Positions 2,140 to 29,005 of a DNA stretch of 64,000 bases are shown here, piece after piece. The notes under the pieces are model-generated. The model was given only the letters and a program-made list of their open reading frames with translations. It was not told where the DNA came from and searched no databases. The DNA is from Lytechinus pictus. Its lineage: Eukaryota. The translations under genes and the position numbers were made by a program. How positions within the stretch are numbered: the stretch's first letter is position 1; every line of letters begins with the position of its first letter. The stretch covers positions 13,888,001 to 13,952,000 of the forward strand of contig NC_087248.1 of NCBI RefSeq assembly GCF_037042905.1, read 5' to 3'.

Positions 2140-3393
2140 TTATGAGTTTGGTGAAAGTTCAGGATTCCCTTTTCCATGAAGATGTATGTAACACACGGTC
2201 GTAAACACAAGTCCAATAGCTAGAAATGATATTATGGAAATTATGATGGCGACGATTTTCTTTACATTTTGTACCCATTCATAAAAAAGTTTCTTGACCA
2301 AAGTGCAATTAGCACTTGGCCCTATGGAAGCTGCAAATTTGCGTAGTTTGGAGGTTTGTTTCGGTGGTAACGTTGTGATTTCAGCTTGCGTTGACGTTGA
2401 AGCAGTTGGCACACTCAAGACCAATTTGGCACAATTCAAAATTGTAGAATAGTTGGAAACCTCAATGAACGATGTACAAGTATTCAGGTCTCCGAGTACG
2501 TTCAACGTTCCTGTGATGTGGACGTTTGGTTTTTGATGAGAGTTATGTTTACAGAGGAACTCTGTGTGATTCTCAAAAGAAGGAATATATAACAATCCAG
2601 TATCATTGTCTTGGATATGGAACCATATTGGATGTGTTTTTCTATTTCCATTGCAGCGTTCAAACACTATCTTATCTTTATTATTTAGAGAGTCCATTGG
2701 TTCTTCAAAAGAAGCAACCCTACACGTCTGGTTTATCATATTCTTTCTATATGTCACCCTGCTTGGTGAATTGTTTGTGTGAAACAATATTTTTTCAAAA
2801 TTTAGAAGCAACGTGAAGCTATTTTCAGAATTGTAAATATCTTGATAATCATTGTCAGATGTTATATTGGAAAGATTCGTTTTCATTTCATCCTCATCCA
2901 ATGGTTTGCAAGACATCGTGACTGTTTTAGTAGTATTCTGAAGAAGCTCTGTGGAAGGAGAGGGGTCGGTAACGGTCAAATTCAGGTTTAAAATGATACA
3001 TTTACTTCTTGATCTATCATGCAGCTTTATTACATGATGACCTGTGTCATTATTCTGAGCATCTTCAATGAATATTGTGACTTTGGTTTTATTTTGTATT
3101 TCTGGAATCAATTTGTAACGTTCAAGGCCGTCTTCCGATCCGGAGCACTGCAGATCATGGGTGCAGATCACTTCCCACATCCTCCCCCTTTTTCGCCATA
3201 ATAGCGAATGGTTCTTGCCGAGTGGTAGATTTAGATATAGACTGAGAGAAACATTCTGCCCTCTGACGACACTTAACGTTTTATCTTCTCTGGGTGCACA
3301 GCTACTACTAGCTGATACAAATGTAAGCTGCCATACCATAAGACCAAAGAGCAGCATCTTCCATCCAAGTTTGACAGTATCCTGACGATGCAT
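2140..3393 (-). CDS. Intronless type-I membrane protein with N-terminal non-canonical V-set Ig-like domain; short cytoplasmic tail (Ig receptor copy A, ~417 aa)
   Basis: ATG at 3393 (the ORF track starts at an upstream TTG). Signal peptide (MLLFGLMVWQLTFVSA), V-set hallmarks (GQNVSL, LLWRK, ERYKL, IFIEDAQNNDTG), many NxS/T sequons, S/T-rich stalk, TM helix IVAIIISIISFLAIGLVFTTVCY, ~15-aa tail. Paralog of 5357-7456. Confidence 0.8.
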   Translation of the reverse strand: MHRQDTVKLGWKMLLFGLMVWQLTFVSASSSCAPREDKTLSVVRGQNVSLSLYLNLPLGKNHSLLWRKRGRMWEVICTHDLQCSGSEDGLERYKLIPEIQNKTKVTIFIEDAQNNDTGHHVIKLHDRSRSKCIILNLNLTVTDPSPSTELLQNTTKTVTMSCKPLDEDEMKTNLSNITSDNDYQDIYNSENSFTLLLNFEKILFHTNNSPSRVTYRKNMINQTCRVASFEEPMDSLNNKDKIVFERCNGNRKTHPIWFHIQDNDTGLLYIPSFENHTEFLCKHNSHQKPNVHITGTLNVLGDLNTCTSFIEVSNYSTILNCAKLVLSVPTASTSTQAEITTLPPKQTSKLRKFAASIGPSANCTLVKKLFYEWVQNVKKIVAIIISIISFLAIGLVFTTVCYIHLHGKGNPELSPNS

Positions 3394-3553
3394 TGTCAAT
3401 GGATAAGACTCAGAGATGCGAAATTATAACCCTATTGATCAACGTCGATTCGTGAAATAATCACATATTTTTCTGGATTCAAAACAGCGTAAGTCATTAG
3501 CATGATGCTGGTAGTGAATAGTAAAAGTAAATCCTTCAAGTATATATCGAGTA

Positions 3554-3863
3554 CAGAAGCGGATCTAGAGGGGGTGTTGGGGGGGTTGCAACCCCCCCCC
3601 CCCAAAAAAAAAAAAAAAAAAAAAAATCCGGGGACCATTTTTTTAAATCTTATCTTTTTTTTAAACTTGTAATTTTATTAGATGCAAGAAAACGCCATTT
3701 TCACACACAGATTTTCAAAAAATTTCCCTATTGTGGGAGGGGGAACACCCCCCTCCCACACCCTCCCCCCTCGCTCGCTCCGCTCGCTTGGACTCGGTCG
3801 CTACGCTCCCTCGCATACCACCCCAACCCCCCCCCCCTTTATAAAAAGCTGGATCCGCCCCTG
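3554..3863. mobile_element. CAG-ended MITE with 5-bp TSD, just upstream of Ig copy A
   Basis: cagaagcggatct... / ...ggatccgcccctg, with GAGTA on both sides. Confidence 0.7.
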
Positions 3864-5356
3864 GAGTATGCATGTTTTCCTCACAGTCATTAACATAGAC
3901 TTTTGAAAGTGAACCATGTAGGCGGACGACTTTGAAAAAGAAAATGCGATTGGCTACAAATTACAAGTAGTCACGCTGGATGGCACTGGTTAGTTCTTCT
4001 TTGCGATGAGTCAAAACAGCGTATTCAAAATCGAAAGAGCGCGTCGACCAAATCGAAAGTATGCAACAGGTAAAATGCTCCGCCATTGGAAAGAAAAGCT
4101 CATGCCCTCGTGAAGTATATTGAAACTTAGTATTGTTTCGAAGATTTTGGTCCTTGAAGAACTACCTTAAACAATATACTGAAAATCGTCTAAACAATCA
4201 AATTAATCTAGATAAAGAGCTCCATTCTGGTTTCCAATTGTCTCTTGACCGATTAACCATATATAGGGATGCTCATTGGACGTGTTTGAATGTTTTATTG
4301 ACAATTTGATCTGTCTACATGTACCTAAGGCGTGAACTGGTCCATTAATATCTTAATGAATTTGAAATGAATATTTGATTGTTTTGTTTTAATGTCTTGG
4401 AACCTTTCTCAGAGGCTTTATCAACCATAAAATTTACGCTGAAATCATTGGCTACATTTTGATATTATACACTTTTTTTCTTCAGATCCGCCACGCGAAA
4501 AAAAAAAATGCTGTCAACAGTGATAAGAAAAACTAAAAATAACCGTGTGTAGATTTATGTTACTCCCTCAACGAAAATTTTCCATTGTTTTTGCAAGAGA
4601 TGATTGGTATTAAAATGATTTTTATGGTTTGAATCCGAAAGACAATAAACATCTCTACCACATCAATCATACTAATCGGTTTTGTGATAGATATAACAAC
4701 CGTGAAGGTCTCGTATACAAGACAAATGTACTTGTTTGTATGTAATTATTTGAAGGAGGGTGTCCAACAATATACTTCAATATGTCAAAATTTATCAATT
4801 CAAAGCAGTCTATTTGATATTTTCTGTCACTTCACCTGCTTGTGACACTGTCATGTCCCGGGGACGTTCTTTCATAGGTAGTGTATCCTTCTGATACTGT
4901 CCTGCCATCTATTATCTAATTGTCTTTTGATTGGTTCGAGTACTATTGCTTAAACTTATAGCGGACGAAACAAGAAATGTGGGTACAAGAAAACAAACCA
5001 AACTTTTCAATCAGTTGTAGGACAAACACTTTTATTTAGATTTTTGTTGAGCTATAGCAGAAAAACACTGATCAAGTAACTGGCGACCAAGCACCATTTG
5101 TATTTTTCGTATCAAACTTTTTTACAACATGCGTGGATTACTTCCAATGGAGTGATAATGATTGAAGGGGATACATTAATTCCATACATACTTCAGGACA
5201 TGTCATTTCTTGAACATCCACATAATGCTAAATAATTTAGGTGACTTAGAATGATATTGCACACCTTAATAATTCCAAGGAACTGTTGATCAAATAATTA
5301 AATACGATAGTAACAATGCTTCTCTGAATCGACTTGTCTGAAAATTATAATTCACA

Positions 5357-7456
5357 ATGCGTCACCACCATAGCTTGACACTTGGATGGAAAATGTTGTT
5401 CTTTGGACTTATGTTGGATCAACTTACATTTGTATCAGCTAGTAGTAGCTGTGTACCCAAAGATGATAAAACGTTAAGTGTCGTCAGAGGGCAGAATGTT
5501 TCTCTCAGTCTATATCTAAATCTACCACTCGGCAAGAACCATTCGCTATTATGGCGAAAAAGGGGGAGGATGTGGGAAGTGATCTGCACCCATGATCTGC
5601 AGTGCTCCGGATCGGAAGACGGCCTTGAACGTTACAAATTGATTCCAGAAATACAAAATAAAACCAAAATCACAATATTCATTGAAGATGCTCATAATAA
5701 TGACACAGGTACTCATGTAATAAAGGTGCAAAGCGGAACAAGAATCAAGTGTACGATCTTAAGCCTGAATTTGACCGTTACCGACCCCTCTTCTTCCACG
5801 GAGCCTCTTCAGAATAATAGTAAAACATTTACAATGTCTTGCAAACCATTGGATAAGGATGGCATGAAAACGGCTCTTTCCAATATAAAATCTGACCATG
5901 ATTATCAAGATATCAACAATTCTGAAAATAGCTTCACGTTACTTCTAAATTTTGAAGAAATATTGTTTCACACAAATAATTTTCCAAGCAGGGTGACACA
6001 TAGAAAGAATATGATAAACCAGACGTGTAGGATTGCTTCGTCAGGAGAGCCCTTATACCCTCTGAATGATAAGGATAAGATAGTGTTTGAACGATGCAAT
6101 GGAAATAGGAAAACGCATCCAATATTGTTCCATATCCGTGACAATGATACCCGATTATTTTATAATCCTTTTTCGGAGAATTACACAGAGTTCCTCTGTA
6201 AACATAACTCTCATAAAAAACCTAACGTCCACATCAGAGGAACGTTGAACGTACTCGGAGACCTGAATACTTGTACATCGTTCATTGAGGTTTCCAACTA
6301 TTCTACAATTTTGAATTGTGCCAAATTGGTATTGAGTGTGCCAACTGCTTCAACGTCAACGCGAGCTGAAATCACAACGTTACAACCACAACAAAACATA
6401 TCTACAACCCCTACAAAAATGTCGGCAGAAACTATCAGTACAGAGAAAGGAGGTGATGAACAACAATACATAGTAATTTTAATCTCAGTTGCATCAATAT
6501 CCGTCATTGCACTTGGATTCTCAGTTGCCTCGTGTTTTTACAAATACAAATTAGTAAGCGGAAGAGGAAACCTTACTGACCATCGAATGAACTTCAAAGC
6601 TGCACATCAGGATGCAGAACCTGTCCAAAGCAATTCTTCTCAGGATTTGTCGCAACACGGTAACAGGGGAACTGTGATATCAGAGAATCCGATTGAAGCT
6701 TCAAGTGACAAAGGAAAGCATGGACATGGTCCAGCTTCATCTGGATGTCAGAGTGAAACTCACGCTAACGAACCACATTCGACACCCTCAGGGTCTGTCA
6801 AGGATCACACCAGACTTCGAGGATTGCCTGATCTTGGGGAAGCAGCTACTTCTACCGACAAGGTGTCCAATAATAAAAACACTCATGTTGATTATTCAGA
6901 AACTATCTATTGCTCTTTGGATGGTTCTGAAGACGAGGGTAACGCTGAAACACGGCCCCCACTTCAATGTTTATCGAGTTCGTTGTTGAGTAGATATGAC
7001 GCCCAATGTGAAGAAGATGCTCCAGATGTAAAGAGTCCTCCTTCGTCACCTAAGGACCTTGGGGATCGGATTGAGCTAAATAATCCCTTTTATGGAGTCA
7101 TTCCTCTACCTTCATCAGGTAAGTCAGATGACCTGACTAGAAACGAAGGAAATCATTCCCTTTCTGACAAAGAATTGCCGTCCTGTATTGCACATACAAA
7201 TACAGGAGGAAGGAATGCGTCGGCCTGTAGTGTCCTGGTGAGGCCAGAAATCGAAGCCTTGTATGCCAAACCCGACAAAAACCGAAAGAAAAAACAGTCA
7301 GATGCTCTTTTAGCCTTGCCCAATTCTTGTCAAGCGGAGTCGACCATTGTAGACATGGATTGCTATTATGTAAACGTTCCGGCAGCCAACAATTCAAGAA
7401 GTTCTACTACGATTGTTACTCGAAAGAGTGATTGCATATATGAATCCTGTGATTGA
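5357..7456 (+). CDS. Intronless type-I membrane Ig-like receptor with ~300-aa cytoplasmic tail carrying tyrosine motifs (Ig receptor copy B, 699 aa)
   Basis: Single ORF: signal peptide, ectodomain paralogous to copy A, TM YIVILISVASISVIALGFSVASCFY, then a low-complexity tail with TIYCSL, NPFY, LYAKP, YYVNV and IYESC. Confidence 0.85.
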   Translation: MRHHHSLTLGWKMLFFGLMLDQLTFVSASSSCVPKDDKTLSVVRGQNVSLSLYLNLPLGKNHSLLWRKRGRMWEVICTHDLQCSGSEDGLERYKLIPEIQNKTKITIFIEDAHNNDTGTHVIKVQSGTRIKCTILSLNLTVTDPSSSTEPLQNNSKTFTMSCKPLDKDGMKTALSNIKSDHDYQDINNSENSFTLLLNFEEILFHTNNFPSRVTHRKNMINQTCRIASSGEPLYPLNDKDKIVFERCNGNRKTHPILFHIRDNDTRLFYNPFSENYTEFLCKHNSHKKPNVHIRGTLNVLGDLNTCTSFIEVSNYSTILNCAKLVLSVPTASTSTRAEITTLQPQQNISTTPTKMSAETISTEKGGDEQQYIVILISVASISVIALGFSVASCFYKYKLVSGRGNLTDHRMNFKAAHQDAEPVQSNSSQDLSQHGNRGTVISENPIEASSDKGKHGHGPASSGCQSETHANEPHSTPSGSVKDHTRLRGLPDLGEAATSTDKVSNNKNTHVDYSETIYCSLDGSEDEGNAETRPPLQCLSSSLLSRYDAQCEEDAPDVKSPPSSPKDLGDRIELNNPFYGVIPLPSSGKSDDLTRNEGNHSLSDKELPSCIAHTNTGGRNASACSVLVRPEIEALYAKPDKNRKKKQSDALLALPNSCQAESTIVDMDCYYVNVPAANNSRSSTTIVTRKSDCIYESCD

Positions 7457-9800: not shown

Positions 9801-10408
9801 CTATCGGCAGAGCTGAACTGGGTGTTCTTCCGATTTCACTATTTATCATGTCTCTTTGATATTGTTGTTTCTTTGTATATGTTTGTTCTAACTTGTTATT
9901 TTTATATCTTGCTTTTATATGTTCATGTTTTTTTATTGTGAATTTCGGAGAATGAATAAATATAAACATAGGTTGTTTCGTATGACATGTACGATGTTTA
10001 AAAGGTTTTCAGTAAAGTTGGTTTCCCTGATTTTTGAAATTGTTTTGTTAATAGGCATGACTACCAGCTCGTTGCTATCCCTACTTGCCGTACAGCTATC
10101 GAAGTTTTCGGAGAGCATAAAAGAAAAGTATAATAATACAGGCCAATGCATGTTTCAGTCAGTCAAAGATATTGGAGTAAAGTAATGAATTAATTCTCTC
10201 TCCTCCATTTCACAGTATAAATGCAATCACAGCGAACATATCAGTAAAATTTTCTTTTAAAAATGTCATCACTGATTCATCGTTAATTTTAGTCAGAATC
10301 ATTTTCAAAAGTTGATGCTCGGTTGACTTTTCATTTTAGATGTCCCGGACATTTGGTCTAAATTTTAGCTTCTAAAATTTTAGGCCCGCAAGAACGGGCC
10401 TAATTTAT

Positions 10409-11032
10409 ATCGTGTGAGTAAAAAAATGACACCTCACAAATCCCCGATTTAAGGAAGAAATATGTCATGAACACATAATCATGATATCTAGCTGGAAAGA
10501 GTATTCCTTCCAAAATAATTTGATACTACCTTTATGTGATATGTCTTCACGCTTGGATAATCAGTAGGTATTATTTGCATTGATGTAAATTCTGATTTGC
10601 GCCAAATTAAGGCATGACAGCAATGAATGAATCAAAATGCCAATGATGTCATGATCTGACATGATTTAGTAAACATATTTTGCAAATCCCTTTTAAATGA
10701 AATCAACTTGAGAATTGATACTAAAAAGTGTTTATTAAACAATTGTAATGTAAACTATTGAAAAGGTGTTTTGAAATGTATTTTAATGCAACCCTTGGTT
10801 ATGATTATGACATCATCTGGATTCATTCATTGCAGCCATGCCTTACTTTGGCGCAAATCAAAATTTATATCACTACAAATAATACCTACTACTTATCCAA
10901 GCGTGAAGACATACCACATTATTTTGGAGAACTTGTTCTTTCATGCCATATAATTATAATAATTATGTGTTCGTGACATATTTTTCCTAAAATTGGGAAT
11001 TTGTGAGATGTCTTTTTTTTACTCACACGGTA
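10409..11032. mobile_element. Tc1/mariner-like MITE with long inverted arms
   Basis: cgtgtgagtaaaaaaa...cacaaat / atttgtg...ttttttactcacacgg(ta). Arms are complementary over >150 bp. Confidence 0.7.
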
Positions 11033-11170: not shown

Positions 11171-12286
11171 TTTTGTCTCACCTGCATAGCAGAGTGAGAC
11201 TATAGGCGCCGCTTTTCCGACGGCGGCGGCGGCGGCGGCGGCGGCGTCAACACCAAATCTTAACCTGAGGTTAAGTTTTTGAAATGACAGCATAACTTAG
11301 AAAGTATATGGACCTAGTTCATGAAACTTGGCCATAAGGTTAATCAAGTATTACTGAACATCCTGCCTGAGTTTCATGTCACATGACCATGGTCAATGGT
11401 CATTTAGGGTCAATGAACTTAGACCATGTTGGGGGAATCAACATCAAAATCTTAACCTAAGGTTAAGTTTTTGAAATGTCATCATAACTTAGAAAATATA
11501 TGGACCTAGTTCATGAAACTTATACATAAGGTTAATCAAGTATCACTGAACATCCTGCATGAGTTTCACGTCACATGACCAAGGTCAATGGTCATTTAGG
11601 GTCAATGAACTTTGGCCGGATTGGGGGTATCTGTAGATTTACCATCATAACTTTAAAAGTTTATGGATCTGATTCATGAAACTTGGACATAATAGTAATC
11701 AAGTATTACTGAACATCCTGTGCAAGTTTCAGGTCACATGATCAAGGTCAAAGGTCATTTAGGGTCAATGAACTTTGGTCAAATTGGGGTATTTGTTGAA
11801 TTACCGCCATAACTTTGAAAGTGTGTTAGTCTAGTTCATAAAACTTGGACATAAGAGTAATGAAGTATCACTGAACATCCTTTGCGCATTTTAGGTCACA
11901 TGACCAAGGTAAAAGGTCAATGAACTTTGGCCATAATGGGGGTATCTGTTGAATTACCATCATAACTTGGAAAGTTGATGGATCTTTCTCTTGAAACTTG
12001 GACATAAGAGTAAGCAAGTATCACTGAACATCCTGTGCGAGTTTCAGGTCACATGATCAAGGTCAAAGGTCATGTAAGGTCAATGAACTTTGGCCACGTT
12101 GGGGGTATTTGTTGAATTACCATCATATCTCTATAAGTGTATGGGTCTAGTTCATAAAACGTGGAAATAAGAGTAACCAAGTATCACTGAACATCTTGTG
12201 CGAGTTATAGTAGTTTTCAAAATCAGCACTGCTGCTATATTGAATCGCGTGATGCAGGTGAGACGGCCAGAGGCATTCCACTTGTT
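11171..12286 (+). mobile_element. Helentron-associated interspersed element (HINE/DINE-1/pearl-like), copy 1
   Basis: 5' subTIR gtctcacctgca with nearby inverted gtgagac, (GGC)n microsatellite, five ~150-190-bp internal tandem units, 3' tgcaggtgagac. Inserted in a T-run. Confidence 0.8.
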
Positions 12287-15200: not shown

Positions 15201-16432
15201 AGAGAAACTGATTCGAAAATGAAAGAGCTAGAAAGAGAAATAAAGGGATGGCCAGCGAAAAAAAGAGAAGGAGAAAGGAAGATAGATCAAGTTAAAGAAA
15301 TAAAAGGTCGAGGAAGAGAGAGGGGAGAGTGAGATAGCATCAAAGAGAAAACAGATGTACATAGTGCCGTATTAAGCTAATATAGGCCTAAATGATGATG
15401 AGCATACGCCATACATCGGACTTTAGTTTGTACAATGCTGTGAATTTTAGTACTGAAAAAAGATTACATGAACAATTAGGGGATGTGTAGTGCGAATGAG
15501 GCTTTTAAAAAGGGTCATTATAGTCCGAACTGTTGGCCAAAAAATTAAAAAAATAAAATAAAACGAACAAACAAATAAATCATCAGCACTAAAACTGTTG
15601 GCCTTTTCTTCCCGAAAAAAAACTGTTTTCCTTCCCCATGTTCCCTAATTTCTCTTGCTTTTAAAACTGATCGAACCACAGCCTATGTATCAATTCAGCG
15701 GAACGAAGACGTTCTTTCATAAGTAGTGTTGCTTAAACTTAAAGCGGACGAAATGAGGGTACAAGAAAACAAAGCAAACTTTTCAATCAGTTGTTGAAGG
15801 ACAAAGACTTATTTAGTTTTTGTTGAGCTAGCACACAAACACTGATCAAGTAACTGGCGACCATGCACCATTTTTTTTTTCGATTTAACTCTTCTACACC
15901 TTGCTTGGATTACTTCCAACGGAGTGATAATGATGGAAGGGAATACAACCACTCTACTTCAGGGTATGTTATTTATTGAACATCCACATAATGCTAAATA
16001 ATTTTACTTGGTGACTTGGAATGATATTGTACACCTTAATAATCCCTGTAATAATTCCAAGGAACTGTTGATCAAATACTTGAATACGATAGTAACAATT
16101 TTTCTCTGAATCGATTTGTCTGAGAATTGTAATTCACAATGCGTCGGCACCATTAAGGCCACCGCACACCTAACGACCCGACTGGTCGGCGACTGGCTTG
16201 CGACTGAGAGAGGGGAGATGAATCGCAAGGCAGTCATAAGCCTCGACACCGCACATCTTGCGATCCGATCTGCGACTCACGCATGCGCTTTTTGCTTTTT
16301 GGCATAGCATCTGAGAAATTGCGCTTACTACTGCGTATGCGCGTTGTTTATCATAATACGCATCGTGCAACTCTGCTGTGTGATTGGCTGGAAGTTGGAT
16401 TGAGCTTGCGATCCAGTCATAAGGATTCGACA

Positions 16433-19143
16433 GTGCAGTGCTGACCAGCTACACCTTCTCTATACTCTTCCTATGGAACAAATATCAAAGAACCTTTTCT
16501 ATAATCTTCCTGCAATGTGCTTGGATCCGACTCAAATCGACCTGCTGCTTGATCAACTTAGCGAAGAAATGTTGAAGGTATCACTAACTCTACCACACTC
16601 GAAGGGCCGTCAGAAAAGAAAAAGGAAAGGGAAAAGAGAGTGGACCAAAAAGGTAGAGGCATGTTATAAACAATCTCAATATTACTGGCGTCTCTGGAGG
16701 GCCAGCGGAAAACCAAAAGGCAAGGACCCTCTCTGGATCAAGCATGTATATACAAAACGTCTATTTAGAAGTAGCATCAGGCAAGCACGGCGGATGTATC
16801 ACAATAATCTCCTTTCAGAAATTGAGGATGCTAAAGGTAGCAATGATAAACTCTTCTATAGGCTTGTCAAAAGCACTAAAGGATCTCGGTCCACTGATAC
16901 ACTGTCTTATAGGGGTACAACATATGAAGGAGAGGCAGTTTTAGATGGCTTCAACTCACATTTCTCAGATCTTGCTAAACCGGATTACATGAATGCCTCT
17001 TCTCCGCCTGAATTGGATGAAGCTATTCCCACTCGCCCGTTCCAGGAAAATTTGAATCAACCACTTCAACCCTCTACTTCAAAAGATCTAGATGAAGCTA
17101 TTAATTCTCTCAAGAAACAAAAAGCTGCAGGACCTGATAATATATCTCCTGAGCATCTTATATATCTTGGCCCAATAGCTCGGAAATTACTTCTCGCCCT
17201 CATCAATCGATGTATATCCCTAAAGTATATTCCTGAACCTTTGAAGTCCGGCCTTATAGTCCCAGTTCACAAAGGAAAGGGAAAAGATGTAAAAGATCCT
17301 TCTAACTACCGAGGCATAACAGTTTCTTCAACAATTGGTAAAGTTTTGGAAATGCTCATCAAATCTCAACTAGAAATTCCACTCGCAATAAATGATGTCC
17401 CAGACCAGTTACAATTTGGATTCCAGAAAGGCAAATCTTGCCTCCTTACTGCATCTTCACTGGAATTAATAATCCAACTGAACTCTGCCAAGAAATGTAC
17501 AACATACCTTGCTCTTCTCGACGCACAGAAAGCATTTGACATCGTTTGGCATAAAGGCCTATTTTCTAAGCTTCAAAACCTAGGCCTCCATGAATCCCTG
17601 TTATCTACACTGGAAGAGTTCTACAACGGTAGTACCAGTAGAGTCATGTGGGAAGGAAAAGTCAGCTCTCCTTTTCAAATCCTTCAAGGTGTAAAACAGG
17701 GGAGTGTGCTCTCTCCCACCTTATATACAGTCTTCATCGATGGCCTGATCAAATCACTAAGGAACGCTTGTCTTGGATGCTCTATTAATGGTTGCTACAT
17801 GGGAGTGATAGTACTAGCAGATGACGTTGCTCTAATCAGTACATGCCCCCGAGAACTCCAATCAATGCTGGATCTCACCTTCTCTTATTCCTGTGATTGG
17901 AGATATAAAATTAATCCACAAAAAAGTGCCGTAGTAGTAATAAACAAAAAAGCATCAACCAGTGTAAGTTCAGTCGAGTGGAAAATGGGAGGAATGACAA
18001 TCAAGGAAAGCAGAGAGCACCCACACCTTGGCATAGTAAAAAGCAATTGTAATATTGACCATACCAATAACATCATTTCAAAGGGATATAACACCTTCTT
18101 CTCTCTCACTGGAACTAAGCAAGGAACTCTACGCCTGCTGCCACCAATATGTACTCATCTTTGGAAAATGTTCTGCATACCAAGAATGCTATATGGGATT
18201 CAGATTATTCAACTTACCAACTACATGCTGTCCCGTTTGAACAAGGCCCAAACATTTCTTTTTAAAAGAGTGCTTGGTTTGCCAAGGAGTGCGGCGGACG
18301 AAATTGTTTATTTATTGCTCGATATCCTCCCAATGGATAAGCGAATCGACTATGAAATTCTTCTCTTACTTGGGCAATATGCAAGCCTTTCAGACGAACG
18401 CACTGAGAGAAGAATCCTGTTGAATGGTATAGCATACAATACACCTTTGGTAAGACGCTGGATAAAAATCCTCAATAGTTATGAGCTTCCAAGTCTCCCT
18501 AACATCCTTAGAGATCGCATTCCATATAAAGTATGGAAGAAGCTAACACTGGGAAAAATTTATAAACAACACTATGCTGCCCTTGAAATTGCAATTGCTA
18601 AAAAATCTTCTCTAAGTCTATGGTCGGGCATGACCCAACGTGATAAAAAGAATTATTACCCAAAGCAAGTCTCCAGCCCTCTCCTGAGGGAAGCTATGTC
18701 CATCAGAGCTCAATTATCCTGCAGTACATACCCAACGAATAGAAGGTTATTCTCTCTGAATCAAAGTACCACAAAGTCCTGCAAGTTCTGCCACTCCGAA
18801 CTGGAAAGTGTTGTACATTTTGTTGGAGAATGCCCAGCGTTTAGCACACACAGGAAAACCCTTCTAAACTTAATAAAAGAAGACGAGGAACTGCAGTATT
18901 TTTCTGTGCATTTCAAAGATCAAGAACCTCAACAATTTACCGCTTCCGTCCTGTTTCTTCCTGACGTCGAATTAGCAGATTCCTCCAGAAACGACCTCAA
19001 CCTACTTGTCTTAAATTTCTTGCATAAGATTCACCTCTCTCGATCTACCTTACTCTCACGTCAAAATATGTAACGCTAATGTTAATGCAGTATTAAACTG
19101 CGGATCTCCGATACAGCGGAGGAAGGATACAGAAGAAGAAGAA
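16433..19143 (+). mobile_element. 5'-truncated non-LTR retrotransposon (RTE-X-like LINE)
   Basis: Contains the RT ORF and a 3' (GAA)n tail ending ~19143. Apparent GACA duplication at 16429-16432 and 19144-19147. No APE endonuclease domain, so 5' truncated. Confidence 0.8.
16473..19073 (+). CDS. LINE ORF2 reverse transcriptase with C-terminal CCHC zinc finger (endonuclease missing)
   Basis: RT motifs KAAGPDNI, NYRGIT, QFGFQKG, LDAQKAFD, GVKQGSVLSP, LADD, HLG, plus CKFC...ESVVHFVGEC. Uninterrupted 866 aa. Confidence 0.92.
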   Translation: MEQISKNLFYNLPAMCLDPTQIDLLLDQLSEEMLKVSLTLPHSKGRQKRKRKGKREWTKKVEACYKQSQYYWRLWRASGKPKGKDPLWIKHVYTKRLFRSSIRQARRMYHNNLLSEIEDAKGSNDKLFYRLVKSTKGSRSTDTLSYRGTTYEGEAVLDGFNSHFSDLAKPDYMNASSPPELDEAIPTRPFQENLNQPLQPSTSKDLDEAINSLKKQKAAGPDNISPEHLIYLGPIARKLLLALINRCISLKYIPEPLKSGLIVPVHKGKGKDVKDPSNYRGITVSSTIGKVLEMLIKSQLEIPLAINDVPDQLQFGFQKGKSCLLTASSLELIIQLNSAKKCTTYLALLDAQKAFDIVWHKGLFSKLQNLGLHESLLSTLEEFYNGSTSRVMWEGKVSSPFQILQGVKQGSVLSPTLYTVFIDGLIKSLRNACLGCSINGCYMGVIVLADDVALISTCPRELQSMLDLTFSYSCDWRYKINPQKSAVVVINKKASTSVSSVEWKMGGMTIKESREHPHLGIVKSNCNIDHTNNIISKGYNTFFSLTGTKQGTLRLLPPICTHLWKMFCIPRMLYGIQIIQLTNYMLSRLNKAQTFLFKRVLGLPRSAADEIVYLLLDILPMDKRIDYEILLLLGQYASLSDERTERRILLNGIAYNTPLVRRWIKILNSYELPSLPNILRDRIPYKVWKKLTLGKIYKQHYAALEIAIAKKSSLSLWSGMTQRDKKNYYPKQVSSPLLREAMSIRAQLSCSTYPTNRRLFSLNQSTTKSCKFCHSELESVVHFVGECPAFSTHRKTLLNLIKEDEELQYFSVHFKDQEPQQFTASVLFLPDVELADSSRNDLNLLVLNFLHKIHLSRSTLLSRQNM

Positions 19144-19334
19144 GACATGTCAAATCCTTCCGATTTTCCTTGCGACTTGTCTCTGACCGGTCTGCGACTC
19201 GAAGCTGACAAGAGCTGTGACGTCACATCTCTCCTCACCCAGTCGCAAGCCAGTCGGCGACTGGTCGGGTCGTAAGGTGTGCGGTGGCCTTAACACTTGG
19301 ATGGAAAATGCTGCTCTTTGGACTTATGGTGTAC

Positions 19335-20096
19335 CCGGCCCCCACACACAGTGTTATTTAGGGTACGTTTATGTTCGTTCCCTCTCTTTGAAAGCACCCC
19401 CTATCTCATGTCTGCCAAAATTTCTGAACCCCCCTTTCGCGGGCTTTTCGCGGGCATTTCCTGCCTTGGAGACCCCCCTAAATCCGGAACACTGCTCAAT
19501 GTACCCCCTTTCTCAGGTGAGCTCTCATTCCTACCCCATATCTCAGGACAGACACCCCCCCCCCCCCCACTTTATATCAGGTAAGCTGTCAAGCTGTCAT
19601 ATATAGGTTTCCTGATGTCATGATGGAGGACAAGCTTTCAAAACTAGCAGGAATGTCAGGAATTTGATCCCGGCAGGAGCCGCGGAACGGTTTTCAAATT
19701 TGGGGGGGGGGGGGTGACCATGCAAAAAATCACAATCATATGGTCATTTTGAGCCAAAAGTGGGGGGGGGGCTGACAATGCAAAAAATCACAATCATATG
19801 GTAATTTTTACGTTTTTGTACATGGTTTTGAAAAAAGGGGGGGGCTGAAGCCCCATCCCCCCCCCCCCGCTTCCGCGGCCCCTGCCGGGATTTGATCATT
19901 TATTTCTATGATATTCAAGATATTCTATAACCCCCTTTTTTATTTCCCAGGAGTCCAAAAATTAAGAGAGAGAAAAATACCTCCCCTTTTTACAATTCGC
20001 GGGCCGGACTTGTCCCCCGAAAAAGTACCCCTTTACCGGACATTTTGGGAACATGCATGCGGTCCCTTCGACCCCGGAGTGGGGGGGGGGGGCGGG
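19335..20096. mobile_element. Non-autonomous DNA element with 9-bp TSD (Mutator-like TSD length), itself containing a CAGG-ended MITE (~19674-19884)
   Basis: ATGGTGTAC duplicated at 19326-19334 and 20097-20105. C-rich and G-rich complementary termini. Interrupts the Ig pseudogene signal peptide. Confidence 0.75.
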
Positions 20097-20979
20097 ATGG
20101 TGTACCAACTTACATTTTTATCTACTCGTAGTAGCTGTACACCCAAAGAAAATAAAACTTTAAGTGTCGTCAGAGGGCAGAATGTTTCTCTCAATTTATA
20201 TCTAAATCGGCCACTCAGGGGGGCGGTAGGGGTGGTCGCCCCCAAAAAGAAAAAAAGGAAAAGGAGAAAAACAAAAAGCGAAAAGGGAGGAAAGGCATAG
20301 CTTTGTTGTTTTTTCCTTCTTTTTTTGTCAAAAGAATAATAACCTAAACGAAACGTTGATCTTCTCTCTTCATACAAAATTTTGCTTCCGTGCGGGAAAT
20401 ATATCGAAAGCGCCTTCACCCTTTGTTCCCTACACCTTTTTTCTACTCCGTTTTCCCCTTCTCGGCTGTGGGAATCTTATATTTTTGCCAGAAATTATAA
20501 ATTATACATGGGTGTATAAGAGTATGAAAAGTACCTTTTTTTATTGCATTGACACAAAATGTCGGCTCTTCTGTTCGGAGTGGGTAAACGTTACCGTCAC
20601 TTCCCGACTCCCCAAATGAAATTTCTTTGGCTTTTCAGCAAGCAACTATTGGCAAAGTATATCTACCCAAAGGGGGAGGCATTAAATTCGTGCCGTGCAA
20701 TATGCAAAAGTATGTACGATATGAAACTTTATACTAAATCGCTGTACATCCATCTCCTGTCTTGTTTTGTGCCATTGATTCAAAATGTTATAATCACTGA
20801 AAAGGAAGCGCTTAATTTGAGCGAAATTACACAATTTTGTTTCTTGTAAAATAAATCACAGAGGTTTCCGTGCTTCACGAGCACGGGAAAAGGGAACTAA
20901 GTCCCTCTTTTAGCTTCTAGCTTGCATCATCCCTTTCACATTTTGAGCTCGTCTTTCTTCTTAATCGGGTTATAGTCTA

Positions 20980-22085
20980 TGTGACGTTTAAGTCTCATTA
21001 ATTTGTATGTCCCTCGTTAGCAAGTCACAAAATCAAACCGAGTTGCGATACCAATTGTTGAACTCTTGAATGCATGGTTCGACCTGCAGTTTAATGAAAC
21101 AATAAACAATCATAAATTGAATGTCATGAAAAACTTGTACAATTGTCGAATGTAGCGTTAATAATCCAATACCTATACATTCACAAAGCCTTTAAATTGT
21201 ACACGAGTCTAAGACATCAACTGACCAGATAATCTAACAACTGTCCTTATTTGTTTCTTATGTTGTTATCATAAAGCTCTCAATTACCGGTATTCATCAT
21301 TAGGCTGCATCCGAAATAAATAACTACAATAACAAACCATTTTGTAAATATAACCTCAACTGAAACATCAAGGTATGATTAAATTCTCACATTTGTTTCT
21401 CATATCCAAAATTCTATATTAAAAACACATTCAGCCATGCCTAAGGCTACAGAAAATATGCCCCTAGCAAGGCATCCCTAGGTTAGCTTGTAACCTTTGA
21501 CCTACTTTCAGTCATACCACTTGTGCATGACTATTATGACATAAATTACCACTATTATCATAAAGGCATGAATTATCATCACTAACAAACTTCATGCAAT
21601 TATGTACCATTTACTTTTCATATCTTATGTAAATAAACGTTTACTAGCTTAAATCAACACACGTGCGTGCTGCGGTCAAGTTTCGCGCACTACACACACA
21701 GTATTGTACTTATACATATGTACATAGACACACCGAAACTTTCACTGAACATGAGCGATAATTCATACAACTTTTGTAACAAAATTTTCACCAAAATATT
21801 CATCATTTAAATCATTTCTTAATACAAACTATCAGTCAACTATTCTTTTTCATATAAACATCTATTTTTAGAATACTTACAACATTGGGCTTGGTCAAAG
21901 GGCAAAATAACGATGACAACAAATTAGCAAGTGTTCCCAAACCAAGTAAAAACATGGGGGACAAAATACAACGCCCTCTACCGATTGGCAACAAAAACCT
22001 ACGCTTCTGACGTCACCGAAACTTTGTGACCCGGAAACGATATGTAAATTTCACACTATAACCACTTTGCATCGTACACTCTACA
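20980..22085 (-). repeat. 3' LTR (~1.1 kb) of the BEL/Pao element
   Basis: On the minus strand a purine-rich PPT (tttagggggccggaa, 22086-22100) is followed by TGTAG at 22085. The LTR ends ...ACGTCACA at 20980, next to the TSD. No second direct copy exists to confirm the U3 boundary. Confidence 0.7.
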
Positions 22086-22402
22086 TTCCGGCCCCCTAAA
22101 TGTGAAGCCTATACAGCTGAACATTTACAACATAATTAAATATTAGCACATCATCTTTACATGTGTTACACAATTTCCAAAACAATCGCTGCATGCTTAG
22201 TATCTTACACACGACTTGTGCATTAAATATTTACACCTTCTTTTGCTAGAAATCAAATGGACATAAATTTGCATAAATCAACTCCAAAATGAAGACAAAT
22301 GTCTCCCTTGCATACACTCATGCAACTTCTTTGTTAATGAGAATTCTCATCAAAAAGACAATATTGTGGCATTCTTATTCTACAGCTACAGTAACATATT
22401 TA

Positions 22403-22441
<39 letters not shown>

Positions 22442-23518
22442 AATATATATATCAAATCATAATTTGGTTCATTCTTCATCTTGAACCTGAAATAAACAAT
22501 AATGCATCCTTTCAAATTTTGAGTGAAATGTTATACTGCAATAATCTTCTCTGTAATACAAGGCAAATACTCCTTTTAAATATATACAAATTAACACAAC
22601 GTTCAGTTTGTACAAATTACTACGAAAAATGCAAACATCATTCATAAAACTAACCAAAGTGGCTTGATATGATGCAAAGGAGTCCAATTTCTCAAACTGG
22701 ACTAGATATGAGACAATTCTGCTGCTTGTAAAGTTTTACCTCCTCTAATTATGTTTTAGAAAAACCTTTTATTATAGTCTTTTAATTCTATCACAAAATC
22801 ATATTTGTCAAACTATAAATTCACCTCTTAAACAAACATTGTATATTTGACACCTGAATGCTTCCTGAATTCAGCTTTCCTTACAACAAACACATTATTG
22901 TATAAAGGAATTTTCAGTCACAAATTTGCAATAACATGCACCTGTTTCTTGTGTAATCATACTGAGTAAATCTTTCACATATAAATCAGAAAGTCCACAT
23001 TTACAACATGTATGAATAATTGTTCACTGTTTCTTTAAAGAGGGAGGGAAAAGTTCTGAGTTCAATGTTCAGCAGTGGGTCAAACTTGAAGCTCACAGAT
23101 TGTAAGAGTTTAATAACATTTTAGAGTTCAGGTTAAAGTTCATTCTGACTCTGGAATTCTCTCTCTGAATAAATTCTTCTGCAAATTTCTCCAAAACAGT
23201 CACTTCTCTGTTGTAGAGTTCTCTGAGCGAAATGATTGAAATATTATAAATTCTCTCAAATTCTTCTTTTCAAACAGTCTTGGCTGGATAAATTGCTCAA
23301 AAGAAAAAGATAATTGTTCAATATCACAGATAAACTATGCTTCTTCATCTGGGTTGATCCACTAATACCGATTGCTCCAAATATCTCGTTGGCTCAAATA
23401 GCAAATGCTCCAAAATTATTAATTTCAAATATATAAGAGGCAGCGCTTGGCTTGCACCTCATCACAACATATTTCATATTTCCTAGCTGTTGTGATATAG
23501 ATTCAATTCCACAAATTT

Positions 23519-26500
23519 TCACAGATCCCCTTCCAAAATTAGGCATAACTTGCTAACAGGTCTCAGCCGCACACCCATCTTGGTTTTGACCTCACATTGA
23601 CGGATGAGACCCTTCCTATCAGGCCTCGTCTGTAGCACTCGTCCCAGTAGCCAGGAGTTTCTCGGTGCATTTTGGTCAACCAAAAGGACAACGTCGCCAA
23701 CCTGGATGTTGCGTCTCGGGGAAACCCATCTCTGCCTGGCTTGCAGTTGAGGTAAGTATTCTTTTACCCATCTAGACCAGAATACATCCGACAGGTACTG
23801 CACTTGCCGCCATCTTCTCCTTGCATATACATCCGTATTGACAGTGATGGAAGGAGGTAGCTGTGGTTTAGTGTTCAGTAGAAGCACATGATTTGGAGTT
23901 AACGCTTCCACATCATTGACATCATTTGTTACCATGGTGATTGGCCTGCTATTTATGATACTCTCTATTTCACAGAAAAGTGTTTGCAGGCCTTCATCAG
24001 TCAGTATCTGCTGTGTAGTGAGAGAAAATAGCACCTTTCTGACAGTCTTGATCATTCTCTCCCACACTCCTCCATGATGCGAGGCACCTGGGGGGTTAAA
24101 GGTCCACTTTACTTCCTTCTGGAGGAGCTCATCATGGAGTTGTGACTGGTTCCATTTTCTGATTTCCATTTTTAGCTCCTTCTCAGCTCCGACTAAATTG
24201 GTACCATTGTCAGATCTGATCTCTTTAACATTTCCTCTCCTTGCCATAAATCGTCTGATGGCATTTATACATGAGTCAGTGTCTAAGGAATGTGCCATCT
24301 CCATATGAATAGCACGTATCGCCAGACATGTGAATACTACTCCATACCGTTTCTCCATGCAGCGTCCCCTTTTCACATCTATAGGTCCGAAATAGTCCAC
24401 ACCAACTCTAGTAAAGGGGGGCTCATCTGGTCTGATTCTGTCTTCAGGTAAATCGGACATCTGCTGTTCCATTACCTTTCCTCTCTGCCTTTTACACATG
24501 ACACATTTGCCCACCATATTTCTAATCAATGAGCTGGCTCCTGTTATCCAGTACTTCTGATGAAGGATTGATATCATGTGATTTCTGCCACTGTGACCAG
24601 ATACTTCATGAATTTTCCTCAGAATAAGCATAGTCACGTGACTGTCTTTAGGCAGTATCACTGGGTGATTAGCTTCATGTGGTAGAGAAGACCTACTCAA
24701 TCTGCCACCCACTCGAAGGAGGCCATCATCCATCTTAGGATCCAGCTTGTAGATCTTACTGTTTTTCTTTACTGTCTTCCACTTCTGATTAGCTCCACCA
24801 TCGTCTGACTGTGCTGTGTTCAAGGCATTTATTTCCTCTGGAAATGCTCTCTTTTGCTCATATGAAAGAATTTTCTTCTCTGCTTCTCTCATTTCATCTA
24901 GTGTCAGTCTAGCTTTCAAAGTCTCTGGTGGATCAGATTTATGTTTGAGCCATACAAAGAACCTCCGAATCCAGCATACTGCTCTCTTCAACCTGTACCA
25001 AGTGGAGTAGTGGCTCAGAAATTCCAAAGTATGGTCAGTCTCAGTTGTCTCCACCATGAATGACTTCCCGTCACTTTTGACCTCAAGATCACTGTCATTT
25101 CCTAGTTTGACATCTGTCACATCTTCAGGCCATGTACTCTCATCATGATAGAGGAAGTCAGGTCCATGTAGCCATCTTTTGTTTTCCTTCATCTCATTGG
25201 CAGTCATACCCCTAGAGGCTTCGTCAGCAGGATTCAGACTTGTCCTCACATGACGCCACTGGTTTGGGTCTGACTTATCTCTGATTGCTGCAACTCTATT
25301 AGCAACAAATGTTTTGAACCTCCTGTCCTCGTTCTTGATATATCTCAAGACAATGGTACTGTCAGTCCAGAACGTCGACTTTGAGATGTTGACATCTAGC
25401 TCCTGTCTCAGAACTCCATCAAGTTTTGTTGCTAGAGTTGCTGCCATTAGTTCAAGCCTCGGCACTGTTACTTTCTTTAAGGGTGTGAGTCTAGACTTGG
25501 CCAATATCAGACTACAATTCACTGTCCCTTCTGTGTTTACCATCACTAAGTAACTCACTGCTCCGTAGGCCTTCTCTGATGCATCAGAAAAATGGTGTAA
25601 CTGGTAGTCCTTCACAGCCCCGAAGTCATGTGGCTTGATACATCTATTTATTGACATGTTTGACATCTCTGGCAGATCCTTCAGCCAGTCTTCCCATTCT
25701 TGTCCTTCACGGTCAGGTACTGGTTCATCCCATTTTAACTTCAATCTGCATAACTCTTGCAAAATGCTCTTTGCCTTCAGGATGTAAGGACTGATGAACC
25801 CCAGAGGATCGTAAATGGACGAAACCACACTCAGCAAACCTCTCCTTGTAGGTGGCTTCTTCTTCGGTACAGCCTTGTACACGAAGCAGTCAGTTTCAAT
25901 GTCCCAACTCAGTCCGAGAGCCCTGTCTACTGGAAGTGCATCATGGTTTAAATCTAATCCCTTTGCCTGCTTTGCTCTCTCTGTTTCTGGGATTGATTCC
26001 AGCACATCAGGATGATTACTTAGCCATTTGGTGAGTCTGAACCCACCTTCCAAGAGCAAACTTCTCAGCTCAGCAGCAATCTTTACAGCTCTCTGTACAT
26101 CATCCACGGACACCAGACAATCGTCCACGTAGAAATTGTGTTGTACCATCTTGACAACTTCCTCATCATACTCTGCCCGATGATCTGCAGCTGTCAGGCG
26201 AAGGGCATAAGTGCAGCAGCTGGGACTCCATGTCCCCCCAAACAAGTGGACACACATTCTATAGACCTCTGGTTGAGCTGTCATATCTCCTGAAGGCCAC
26301 CACAGGAACTTAAGCACATCTCTATCTGCTTCTGGAACCCTCACCTGATGAAACATGGCCTCTATATCAACCATTATTGCCACTGGTGCTTGTCTGAATC
26401 TGAGAAGAACTCCAATGAGTTTATTTGTTAGGTCTGGACCTTGGTAGACTACATCGTTCAAAGCAGTCCCATTACACTTTGAGGCACAGTCGAAAACGAT

Positions 26501-28450
26501 TCGCACCTTATCCGGCTTCATGGCATGCAGGACTGGGTGGTGGGGAAGGTACCATTGTGCCTTATCATCGTGGAAGGAATCTTCTTTAGGCACCTTTTCA
26601 CAGAAGCCCTTCTGTAACAGATCATTCATGCCTTCTGTGTATTTTGAGCGCAATCTGTCATCCTTGCTCAGTTTTCTGCTAAGGCTCACCAGTCTCTGCT
26701 CTGCTACCCATCTGTTATTTGGAAGCTCTGGTGGTCGCTGTTTAAATGGTATGGGCAGCTGATAATGTCCATCTTCCATGGCCTTTCCTTTTGCCCATAT
26801 CTCAGTTACCTTTCTGTCATTCACCGACAGGCCTCTTTCATCAGCGGTTTCTGCTTCCAACTTCCAAAATCTTTCAAGCTGCGTCTCCAGATGACAATCC
26901 CCATCAATAAAGCTGCTTGAAGCCTTGACATGTCCCTGATTAGCCTCTCCAGATATCGGACCATGTAAGGACCATCCAAGAATTGTACGTACAGCATATG
27001 GTCCAGTCTCTGCCTTTCTCACCTCCAGAGGAATGAGGGCCTCAGGTGCATCTTGACCAATCAACAGACCGATCTCTTGCCCTCTTGCAATTGGCAAATT
27101 AATATCTTGTAGATGAGGCCAACCAGAAATCTCTCCTACTGATGCCATGTGATCACTCCTGATGTTTATCCTCTCCTTAGTGAATACATTTTCTATCCTA
27201 ACTGCTTCAGACATTGGGCCAGTATCAACCACCAGATCCACTACCTTGGTTTCCAATGTCTGTTCATTGTCGATGGTGGTCAACGATAGCCTCTGTGTCT
27301 GACCTTTGGCATTCAACTTCTCCGCCAGGCTCTTGGTACAGAAGGAGTTCGTGGATCCTGTATCCAACAAAGCAAATGTTCTCAATGCTTTACCACCAGA
27401 TGCTGTTTGGACTCGAACAGGCACAATGGGCAGGACACATCTTTTACCGGCCCCCGTGGCATTACCAAAGGTGCTTTTAGCAGTCTCGACGAACCCATTC
27501 TGAGATGATGATGCTGTGGTCCCATCAGTCTCACTGGAACTGGATGACTGCTGTCTTGTATCCTTCAAAACATCTGTCTTCTGTGAATCGTCCTTCCTCT
27601 TAAGATGCAGAAACCTACTATGTTTCCTATTACATCCTTTCACAGAGCAGGTTCTATTTAGGAAACATTTACTTGAACTGTGTCCTGGCTTGAGACAATT
27701 AAAGCATAAATGCTTATCCTTCGCCATTTGCAAACGTTCTTCAGGTTTCATGTCCTTAAACAGGTTGCAAGAAAAGATGCCATGGTCCTTGTCACAAAGA
27801 ACACAGTCCACTTCCTTCTTCTTCTCTGATCCAGCAAAGTTGACCCCAGCTGCTTGAGATGATCTTTTCCCAAGTGACTGTTTTGATCCTTGAGGCTGCT
27901 TCTTCTTGTCTCCAAACAGCTCTCCATAGACTGGATCATTGATTTCACAGGCTGCGTCAGTCACAAAGCGTACCACATCTTTCAACTTGGGAGATCTACC
28001 TTGGTGACGGACATCTTTGACGACCTTGAGCCACCTGGCTCTCAGATAATAAGGCAGTCTCTCTACAATCTTTACAAGGTGTTGTTGCGAACTTATCTCT
28101 GCAACCATGTCCACCGCCTGTAGAGTCTCGCAGCAAACCTGCAGCTCATCTGCGAACTTCTGCAGTCCTTTCTTGTCACTTGGCTGCAATGTTGGCCCAT
28201 TAATGACTTTCTTTGTCCAAGCATCTCCTATCTTGAACTTGTTGCCATATCGTTCTTCCAGGATGCTTCTGGCTTTCTTGTAGGCTACTGCAGAGTCCAT
28301 GACCATACACGACTGAATAATGGATCTTGTTTCACCTTGGCAACAACTGAATAACTTCAGAAGCTTGGAGCTGTCATCCAGGGACGTCCTTCCTACCAGA
28401 CTGTCAAATGATGTGATAAATTCATGGTAGTGTAGAGGACTTCCATGCAT
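23519..28450 (-). CDS. BEL/Pao Gag-Pol polyprotein (N-terminally truncated Gag, PR, RT, RNase H, integrase), 1643 aa
   Basis: Three Cys/His knuckles (CVLC..H..C, CFNC..GH..C, CSVKGC..H..LH), protease LLDTGS, RT YVDD, RNase H FSDAS, integrase HHCC plus GVDYFGP, SDNGTN, GVWER. BEL domain order, no internal stops. Confidence 0.95.
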   Translation of the reverse strand: MHGSPLHYHEFITSFDSLVGRTSLDDSSKLLKLFSCCQGETRSIIQSCMVMDSAVAYKKARSILEERYGNKFKIGDAWTKKVINGPTLQPSDKKGLQKFADELQVCCETLQAVDMVAEISSQQHLVKIVERLPYYLRARWLKVVKDVRHQGRSPKLKDVVRFVTDAACEINDPVYGELFGDKKKQPQGSKQSLGKRSSQAAGVNFAGSEKKKEVDCVLCDKDHGIFSCNLFKDMKPEERLQMAKDKHLCFNCLKPGHSSSKCFLNRTCSVKGCNRKHSRFLHLKRKDDSQKTDVLKDTRQQSSSSSETDGTTASSSQNGFVETAKSTFGNATGAGKRCVLPIVPVRVQTASGGKALRTFALLDTGSTNSFCTKSLAEKLNAKGQTQRLSLTTIDNEQTLETKVVDLVVDTGPMSEAVRIENVFTKERINIRSDHMASVGEISGWPHLQDINLPIARGQEIGLLIGQDAPEALIPLEVRKAETGPYAVRTILGWSLHGPISGEANQGHVKASSSFIDGDCHLETQLERFWKLEAETADERGLSVNDRKVTEIWAKGKAMEDGHYQLPIPFKQRPPELPNNRWVAEQRLVSLSRKLSKDDRLRSKYTEGMNDLLQKGFCEKVPKEDSFHDDKAQWYLPHHPVLHAMKPDKVRIVFDCASKCNGTALNDVVYQGPDLTNKLIGVLLRFRQAPVAIMVDIEAMFHQVRVPEADRDVLKFLWWPSGDMTAQPEVYRMCVHLFGGTWSPSCCTYALRLTAADHRAEYDEEVVKMVQHNFYVDDCLVSVDDVQRAVKIAAELRSLLLEGGFRLTKWLSNHPDVLESIPETERAKQAKGLDLNHDALPVDRALGLSWDIETDCFVYKAVPKKKPPTRRGLLSVVSSIYDPLGFISPYILKAKSILQELCRLKLKWDEPVPDREGQEWEDWLKDLPEMSNMSINRCIKPHDFGAVKDYQLHHFSDASEKAYGAVSYLVMVNTEGTVNCSLILAKSRLTPLKKVTVPRLELMAATLATKLDGVLRQELDVNISKSTFWTDSTIVLRYIKNEDRRFKTFVANRVAAIRDKSDPNQWRHVRTSLNPADEASRGMTANEMKENKRWLHGPDFLYHDESTWPEDVTDVKLGNDSDLEVKSDGKSFMVETTETDHTLEFLSHYSTWYRLKRAVCWIRRFFVWLKHKSDPPETLKARLTLDEMREAEKKILSYEQKRAFPEEINALNTAQSDDGGANQKWKTVKKNSKIYKLDPKMDDGLLRVGGRLSRSSLPHEANHPVILPKDSHVTMLILRKIHEVSGHSGRNHMISILHQKYWITGASSLIRNMVGKCVMCKRQRGKVMEQQMSDLPEDRIRPDEPPFTRVGVDYFGPIDVKRGRCMEKRYGVVFTCLAIRAIHMEMAHSLDTDSCINAIRRFMARRGNVKEIRSDNGTNLVGAEKELKMEIRKWNQSQLHDELLQKEVKWTFNPPGASHHGGVWERMIKTVRKVLFSLTTQQILTDEGLQTLFCEIESIINSRPITMVTNDVNDVEALTPNHVLLLNTKPQLPPSITVNTDVYARRRWRQVQYLSDVFWSRWVKEYLPQLQARQRWVSPRRNIQVGDVVLLVDQNAPRNSWLLGRVLQTRPDRKGLIRQCEVKTKMGVRLRPVSKLCLILEGDL

Positions 28451-29005
28451 TCAAGAGTTCAACAATTGGTATCGCAACTCGGTTTGATTTTGTGACTTGC
28501 TAACGAGGGACATACAAATTAATGAGACTTAAACGTCACAGTCTAAGAAATCTCAAAATTGTAACAGGTTAAAGTTTTAGAGAAATTTCTAAAGTTCAGA
28601 GCTTCAACGCCATTCGCGGGAAGGAATAGGGCCTATTTCCTTCCTGCATACCCGTCTTCTACTCTGTTTTGCGACTTGAGTTAAGTTGAGTTAACGAAAT
28701 CTATATAAAATCTGATGTGACCATGCAAGGTAGGCATTTTATACCACTTATGTTCTCAATTTATATAAAACGTTTTAGCTTCCGCGCTTTGCGCGGTAAG
28801 AAGAATTATTTTGAATTCCTCAATCTTTTCCTATTTTGGGGGCGCTAATAATTTCATGATTTACAAAACATGAAAAGAGTGTCCCGTTTTAGGACTATTT
28901 TTTCCGCTCGCGCTTCCCGCTCGTATTAATTATGTACTTATATACCTGTCCTGTTCATGATTACAAAAAAGTGTTTAGAATGCCCCATTTTTAAGTCAGA
29001 AAGAC

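Follow-up and report, generated by a model that had tools for sequence, protein, structure and literature searches.

Recent gene conversion as the best explanation for the identity mosaic of two head-to-head V-set-like genes in Lytechinus pictus

The 64,000-nt stretch of Lytechinus pictus contig NC_087248.1 analyzed here (positions 13,888,001 to 13,952,000 of GCF_037042905.1, the one assembly examined; hereafter the window, in whose numbering features are placed) carries two head-to-head neighbouring genes, A and B, which share an ectodomain block where perfectly identical tracts lie beside diverged sequence. The genes are two long uninterrupted open reading frames (ORFs) about 2 kb apart. Gene A (2140-3393, minus strand) is intronless and encodes 417 aa from an ATG at 3393, and gene B (5357-7456, plus strand) is likewise intronless and encodes 699 aa. 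Both products have a hydrophobic signal-like N-terminus, numerous N-x-S/T sites and one hydrophobic transmembrane (TM)-like segment. In gene A, the signal peptide is followed by a V-set-like domain, ~200 beta-rich residues, a hydrophobic TM segment in which direct reading of the translation reveals no charged residue, and a cytoplasmic tail of ~15 aa. Gene B combines an ectodomain like that of A with a different stalk and TM segment and a ~290-aa cytoplasmic tail containing tyrosine motifs. These motifs (T-I-Y-C-S-L, Y-V-N-V, L-Y-A-K-P and I-Y-E-S-C) were read directly from the translation, and none of them is established as an immunoreceptor tyrosine-based inhibitory motif (ITIM).

The genome contains at least 12 intronless paralogs of 450-800 aa, with 19-25% protein identity to B. 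Most are located on the same contig as the window (C4:13.43-13.48 Mb; L003-L013), and one is found at C5:15.38 Mb (L014). The product of a paralog 420 kb away is identical at 660 of 660 compared residues to XP_063955053.1, "uncharacterized protein LOC135153983 [Lytechinus pictus]". Several cytoplasmic motifs are common to the paralogs, namely Y-C-S-x-D-D, L-Y-A-K-P-D-x-S-R-K-T-K, D-Y-D-D-P-R and a C-terminal L-Y-M-N-T-S. A profile search with a threshold of E<=1e-10 recovered 125 proteins. Close external relatives are limited to one UniParc entry (P0001, 39% identical), and no closer orthologue was found by word-indexed protein searches, an exhaustive profile search or exact look-up. The tail of B is homologous to that of P0001 (E=2e-18); the last 83 aa of A gave no significant BLASTP match to P0001 and are without a relative elsewhere in the genome. 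When aligned over their full length, A reaches ~20 residues further into the P0001 stalk than B. The exact A and B products are absent from a public collection of 15 billion proteins in which a family member from the same genome is present; public annotation may lack the pair or may model it in another way.

The fold of the first domain was assessed from domain profiles, the family alignment and structure models. Against the Pfam V-set profile, A scores 15.8 bits and B scores 14.8 bits (16.5 bits for the ectodomain alone), all under the gathering cut-off of 26, and the same profile matches 13 of 48 family sequences at E<=0.01 (best, 9.4e-12). Residues W66, R92, D116 and G118 are invariant in the family alignment, and Y93 is nearly so. 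The canonical B-F disulfide cysteines are both replaced in A and B, with W66 and D116-x-G118 kept, and the paralog L014 retains the canonical C...W...DSGSYEC pattern. AlphaFold, supplied with the 48-sequence alignment, models residues 38-143 as a nine-strand sandwich with a predicted local distance difference test (pLDDT) score of 87-96. The best structural match of an earlier model was an antibody Fv (Z=12.7, root-mean-square deviation of 2.6 A over 113 residues), followed by the V domains of the T-cell receptor, PD-1, BTN (butyrophilin) and CAR. The first domain is predicted with high confidence to adopt a V-set immunoglobulin (Ig) fold, while domains 2-3 (~200 residues) are beta-rich and modelled at low confidence in both structure models. 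As a whole, these features are best explained if A and B are intronless genes for type I membrane proteins, members of a family in Lytechinus pictus with an N-terminal Ig V-set fold.

The part shared by the two genes forms the only inverted pair returned by the repeat finder (90% complementary). Its arm in gene A (2355-3400, minus strand) starts 7 nt before the ATG and runs as far as codon 346, and its arm in gene B (5350-6395, plus strand) is 90.2% identical to the first, with 102 mismatches over 1046 nt, no indels and sharp homology edges at both ends. In gene B, homology starts 7 nt before the ATG and stops at 6395, ~45 codons ahead of the TM segment. No A-B similarity is detected by blastn or tblastn, in DNA or protein, after 6395 or upstream of 5350, and tblastn and blastn queries with the B tail and the A 3' end found nothing. 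All that the genes share is the block reaching from the start codon to where the ectodomain ends. A preliminary description of this DNA regarded the TM ends as far more diverged; that wording needs correction, as the two genes have no detectable similarity there, not merely additional divergence. The same description took A and B to be old paralogs, which is uncertain. One equally good possibility is that gene A arose as a partial inverted copy of an ectodomain of the B/C type (C being a broken third copy described below) and was joined to a new 3' end; another is that A and B are old paralogs and that an old conversion event produced the whole ectodomain block.

Mismatches placed at random over this block are expected to leave short runs of identity. 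We observed instead a perfect tract of 204 nt (tract 1; 5465-5668, plus strand; codons 37-104), which is identical to the reverse complement of 3082-3285 at every position, silent sites included, as the preliminary description had stated. A second tract (tract 2; 6238-6383, plus strand; partner 2367-2512; codons 294-343) has 2 mismatches in 146 nt and abuts the 3' homology boundary. It begins with a perfect run of 93 nt (6238-6330), after which mismatches occur at 6331, 6363 and 6384, so the earlier account of ~93 identical nt from 6238, continuing with two mismatches to ~6383, also holds. When 102 mismatches were placed randomly on 1046 sites in 200,000 trials, a run of 204 was never reached (P<5e-6), the mean longest run being 50 and the largest 175; an analytic estimate gives ~8e-8. 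A uniform distribution of substitutions, raised in the preliminary description as the counter-case, is thus far from what is seen. The probability of a second run of at least 93, computed on 5465-6395, is 4.5e-5, and third codon positions taken alone yield a run of 76 (P=4.5e-4).

Unequal constraint on the proteins is expected to spare silent sites, which were compared using Nei-Gojobori counting of synonymous (dS) and nonsynonymous (dN) divergence. Tract 1 has 0 differences over 45.3 synonymous sites, compared with a proportion of synonymous differences (pS) of 0.216 in the middle segment, from which ~10 would be expected (P=1.6e-5). In tract 2, no more than 2 of 146 nt differ, where the background is 12.8% (P=5e-7). 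Because silent sites are identical in the tracts, unequal protein constraint cannot account for them. The tracts also have a higher G+C content (0.44 in tract 1 and 0.42 in tract 2) than the middle (5669-6237; 0.36 in B and 0.34 in A), which fits GC-biased conversion, although composition alone is also possible. The mosaic of A-B identity is therefore non-random, and this observation is statistically solid.

Divergence outside the tracts is itself uneven. The most diverged aligned segment is the signal-peptide region (5353-5464, plus strand), where 21 of 70 sites differ within 5353-5422 and dS=0.50. Between the tracts, ~41-42 amino-acid differences were counted in codons 105-294, in line with the ~40 over ~190 residues reported earlier, and the segment has dS=0.255, dN=0.113 and dN/dS=0.44. 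Two dense patches stand out within it. Patch 1 (5726-5763, plus strand; partner 2987-3024) differs at 14 of 38 sites and falls within codons 119-136, and patch 2 (6032-6073, plus strand; partner 2677-2718; codons 226-239) differs at 14 of 42 sites; the middle outside these patches has 9.2% differences and a pS of ~0.15. In scan statistics, the clustering of differences in the two patches reaches only modest significance (P ~0.01-0.03). On the structure model, residues 37-104 of tract 1 make up V-domain strands A' to D together with the BC and C'C'' loops, and residues 119-136 of patch 1 run from the last part of strand F through the F-G turn (127-128) into the beginning of strand G. The peptides encoded by codons 119-134 are HHVIKLHDRSRSKCII in gene A and THVIKVQSGTRIKCTI in gene B. 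The preliminary description, which named the F-G loop (equivalent to complementarity-determining region 3, CDR3) as the densest patch, gave these peptides and their structural placement correctly; patch 2, however, is equally dense.

A third copy of the sequence allows the history of the 5' edge of tract 1 to be assessed. This broken copy, relic C (15722-20216, plus strand, in the orientation of B), consists of pieces at 15722-16153, 19289-19331 and 20097-20216. A search of the genome DNA identified the pieces at 16083-16153, 19289-19331 and 20097-20216, and local BLAST extended the first to 15722-16153, which corresponds to the upstream region and the first codons; the copy stops at approximately codon 58. 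Relic C is interrupted twice: one insertion contains a reverse-transcriptase ORF (16473-19073), and another, of ~770 nt, is flanked by a 10-nt duplication, ATGGTGTACC (near 19322-19331 and at 20097-20106). About 430 nt of upstream sequence is common to B and relic C at 82.5% identity, and A lacks it. In the signal-peptide region, 13 informative sites group B with C against A, 7 group A with C against B, and 5 group A with B against C. In the first 66 nt of tract 1, by contrast, all 6 of 6 informative sites group A with B against C, and this switch in topology at the 5' edge of the tract is significant (Fisher P=3.4e-4). Since B is nearer to C outside tract 1 yet identical to A within it, the switch points to gene conversion between A and B after the B/C duplication. 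Relic C is truncated ahead of a BEL/Pao element at 20975-28545.

Recent interlocus gene conversion between A and B best explains the perfect tracts, and we put the probability of this at roughly 75%. Within the shared block, two stretches of ~200 and ~150 nt would have been overwritten very recently by non-reciprocal copying between inverted paralogs 2 kb apart, presumably when a break was repaired with the paralog as template. Such copying would have erased every A-B difference in the tracts, silent ones included, leaving the remaining block ~9% diverged, with three islands (signal peptide, F-G patch and patch 2) at 30-37% that earlier homogenisation would have skipped. Ectopic gene conversion had already been proposed in the preliminary description, and both the identity at silent sites and the topology switch against relic C support it. 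Repeated homogenisation, as claimed there, is plausible but not proven; the three divergence levels in the block fit repeated patchy conversion because 0%, ~9% and 30-37% coexist. We infer the conversion mechanism itself, its recurrence and any functional benefit that an identical CDR1/CDR2-equivalent face would bring to two receptors with different tails. The process is a known one, and the pair is a new local example of it.

Several observations weigh against this interpretation. The nearest relative, at 39% identity, is too distant for testing whether paralogs cluster by species and for establishing the direction or number of events. Relic C spans only the 5' boundary of tract 1, and the 6 informative sites inside the tract are a small sample. 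Segmentation by the Bayesian information criterion with a strict penalty separates only tract 1 as a block of its own. The public reads comprise six runs from three studies, each with ~10% of sampled words, and four of the runs gave only ~130-nt contigs, 92-95% alike and with 5-9% differences, at zero depth over 5358-5900, the interval that contains tract 1 on B. No RNA run was among those retrieved.

Diversifying selection is expected to favour replacements over silent changes. We considered the proposal of the preliminary description that conversion is accompanied by diversifying selection on the F-G (CDR3-equivalent) loop, with replacements favoured on a ligand-binding surface. Patch 1 does occupy the F-G region of the V domain described above, conservation within domain 1 is lowest over this stretch in the family consensus, and the non-tract part of the V domain has a higher dN/dS (0.82) than domains 2-3 (0.37). 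However, patch 1 (codons 119-136) has pS=0.41 and dN/dS=0.56, and selection on amino acids does not produce an equal enrichment of silent differences; these are indeed enriched in the dense patches relative to the remaining middle (P=0.0015). The equally dense patch 2 has pS=0.63 and a dN/dS of only 0.22, and polarising the differences with P0001 as outgroup gives no information (P0001 matches B at 7 sites, A at 5 and neither at 33). The dN/dS values of the F-G patch, the non-tract part of the V domain and the whole between-tract segment (0.56, 0.82 and 0.44) are all below 1. Because silent sites are as diverged as replacement sites in the patches, they provide no evidence of diversifying selection, and the example illustrates that dense amino-acid differences in a CDR3-like loop are no evidence of positive selection when silent sites are equally diverged. 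Selection on the F-G loop is thus an improbable addition to conversion. In domains 2-3, where dN/dS is below neutrality (P=0.001), selection is purifying, which indicates that both ORFs are, or recently were, under constraint.

The best reading of the dense patches is that they are older and were passed over by a homogenisation of intermediate age, and that positive selection did not produce them. Alternatively, they may have been imported from a donor gone from the assembly. Import from a third assembled paralog is not supported, as a search allowing up to 3 mismatches gave no further copy of either version of the F-G sequence in the genome. Conversion elsewhere in the family was set aside, the other paralogs being only 72-76% identical over parts of their length.

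Identical tracts could also be generated artificially if assembly or polishing corrected one paralog with reads from the other while the real genes differ. The zero depth over 5358-5900 in all four public runs is compatible with such an error. Nevertheless, the arms are otherwise 10% diverged, free of gaps and joined to unrelated 3' ends, so that the arrangement is no fold-back or collapse, and ~20 expected differences would have to be changed consistently to the state of one paralog, with sharp edges, on two occasions. In addition, a few contigs matched two places of the window, as expected of real shared tracts. An artefact is accordingly quite unlikely, more so than selection on the F-G loop. 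Least credible of all is a nucleotide-level constraint, in which an overlapping DNA or RNA element would forbid even silent changes in both genes. This is a logical alternative for silent-site identity with no direct support. Relic C, a pseudogene, has 6 differences over 66 nt of this part of tract 1, and a constraint so strong over 204 nt of two paralogs would be unusual with ~22% silent divergence immediately adjacent.

Contigs from other individuals or a close species differ by 5-9% from the reference over part of gene A (2545-2762). Among the 17 variants listed there, with 61 further ones outside the list, 8 fall on A/B diagnostic sites, 7 of these 8 carrying the letter of B. Such letters could represent either polymorphism shared between the paralogs through conversion or ancestral states. 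They were not accepted as evidence of ongoing conversion, because ancestral states in a diverged allele or a sister species would look alike.

The closest analogues of A and B are paired receptors of vertebrates, in which, by the textbook account, gene conversion limited to the ectodomain keeps the two members of an activating/inhibitory or decoy pair alike. The CEACAM1/3, KIR, LILR and CD300A/C pairs, also homogenised in this way, have a similar anatomy to A and B, with the same ectodomain on unrelated TM segments and tails. Conversion of this kind is documented for vertebrate paired receptors such as Siglec-11/Siglec-16 (PMC5701461). The likeness to that pair extends to two Ig-superfamily membrane receptors with near-identical ectodomains on unrelated TM and cytoplasmic parts, and to a converted part under relaxed constraint that is still below neutral. 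In contrast to the vertebrate pairs, A and B belong to an echinoderm, are intronless, so that the shared block is not bounded by exons, and lie head to head 2 kb apart. They also differ from activating/inhibitory pairs in that the short-tailed A lacks a charged residue in its TM segment and neither a canonical ITIM nor an immunoreceptor tyrosine-based activation motif (ITAM) is established.

Two other kinds of system offer partial parallels. Inverted duplications and palindromes with arm-to-arm conversion likewise have close inverted arms and perfect cores beside diverged edges. The identity of A and B, however, is patchy, with two short tracts in a 1-kb arm and not one long core, and the arms sit inside two protein-coding genes that stay distinct. 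Among sea urchin gene families, recombination or gene conversion has been invoked for SpTransformer/185-333 (SpTrf; PMC1988830, PMC8634487), and the Toll-like receptor (TLR) genes are reported as intronless multigene families (PMC3367398). These families resemble that of A and B in being clustered, fast-evolving and largely lineage-specific in echinoids, but A and B belong to another protein family (a V-set Ig domain, two beta-rich domains and a tyrosine-motif tail) and any immune role of theirs is putative.

It is possible, although doubtful, that A and B are an invertebrate analogue of paired receptors. Recurrent conversion would then keep the CDR1/CDR2-equivalent face identical in a long-tailed signalling receptor and a tail-less partner, and conversions that erase the F-G difference would be selected against, leaving a ligand surface that is mostly shared but tuned differently. 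If true, the same signature in an echinoderm V-set pair would extend the evolutionary logic of paired receptors beyond vertebrates. A further implication would be an uncharacterised sea urchin receptor family that evolves fast, numbers at least 12 intronless genes and conserves a tyrosine-motif tail. For now, the locus is mainly a clean local case of a common process, and its interest would rise if A and B prove to be a functional receptor pair.

The spacer between the divergent genes (3401-5349) is asymmetric, has the 420 nt next to B (4939-5356) in common with relic C, and contains a high-copy repeat at ~3548-3909. Logan contig depth climbs from tens elsewhere to thousands or tens of thousands over this repeat, and loose contig ends are frequent at 3678, 3749, 3768 and 3863. 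Further along the window, a tandem array at 11255-12000, with units of ~160-190 nt that are 61-91% alike, adjoins nested inverted repeats at 10408-11032. Near the end of the window, an ORF at 63190-63885 has a partial match to hyaluronidase (Glyco_hydro_56, E=9e-10) and is probably a single exon of a gene that runs off the window.

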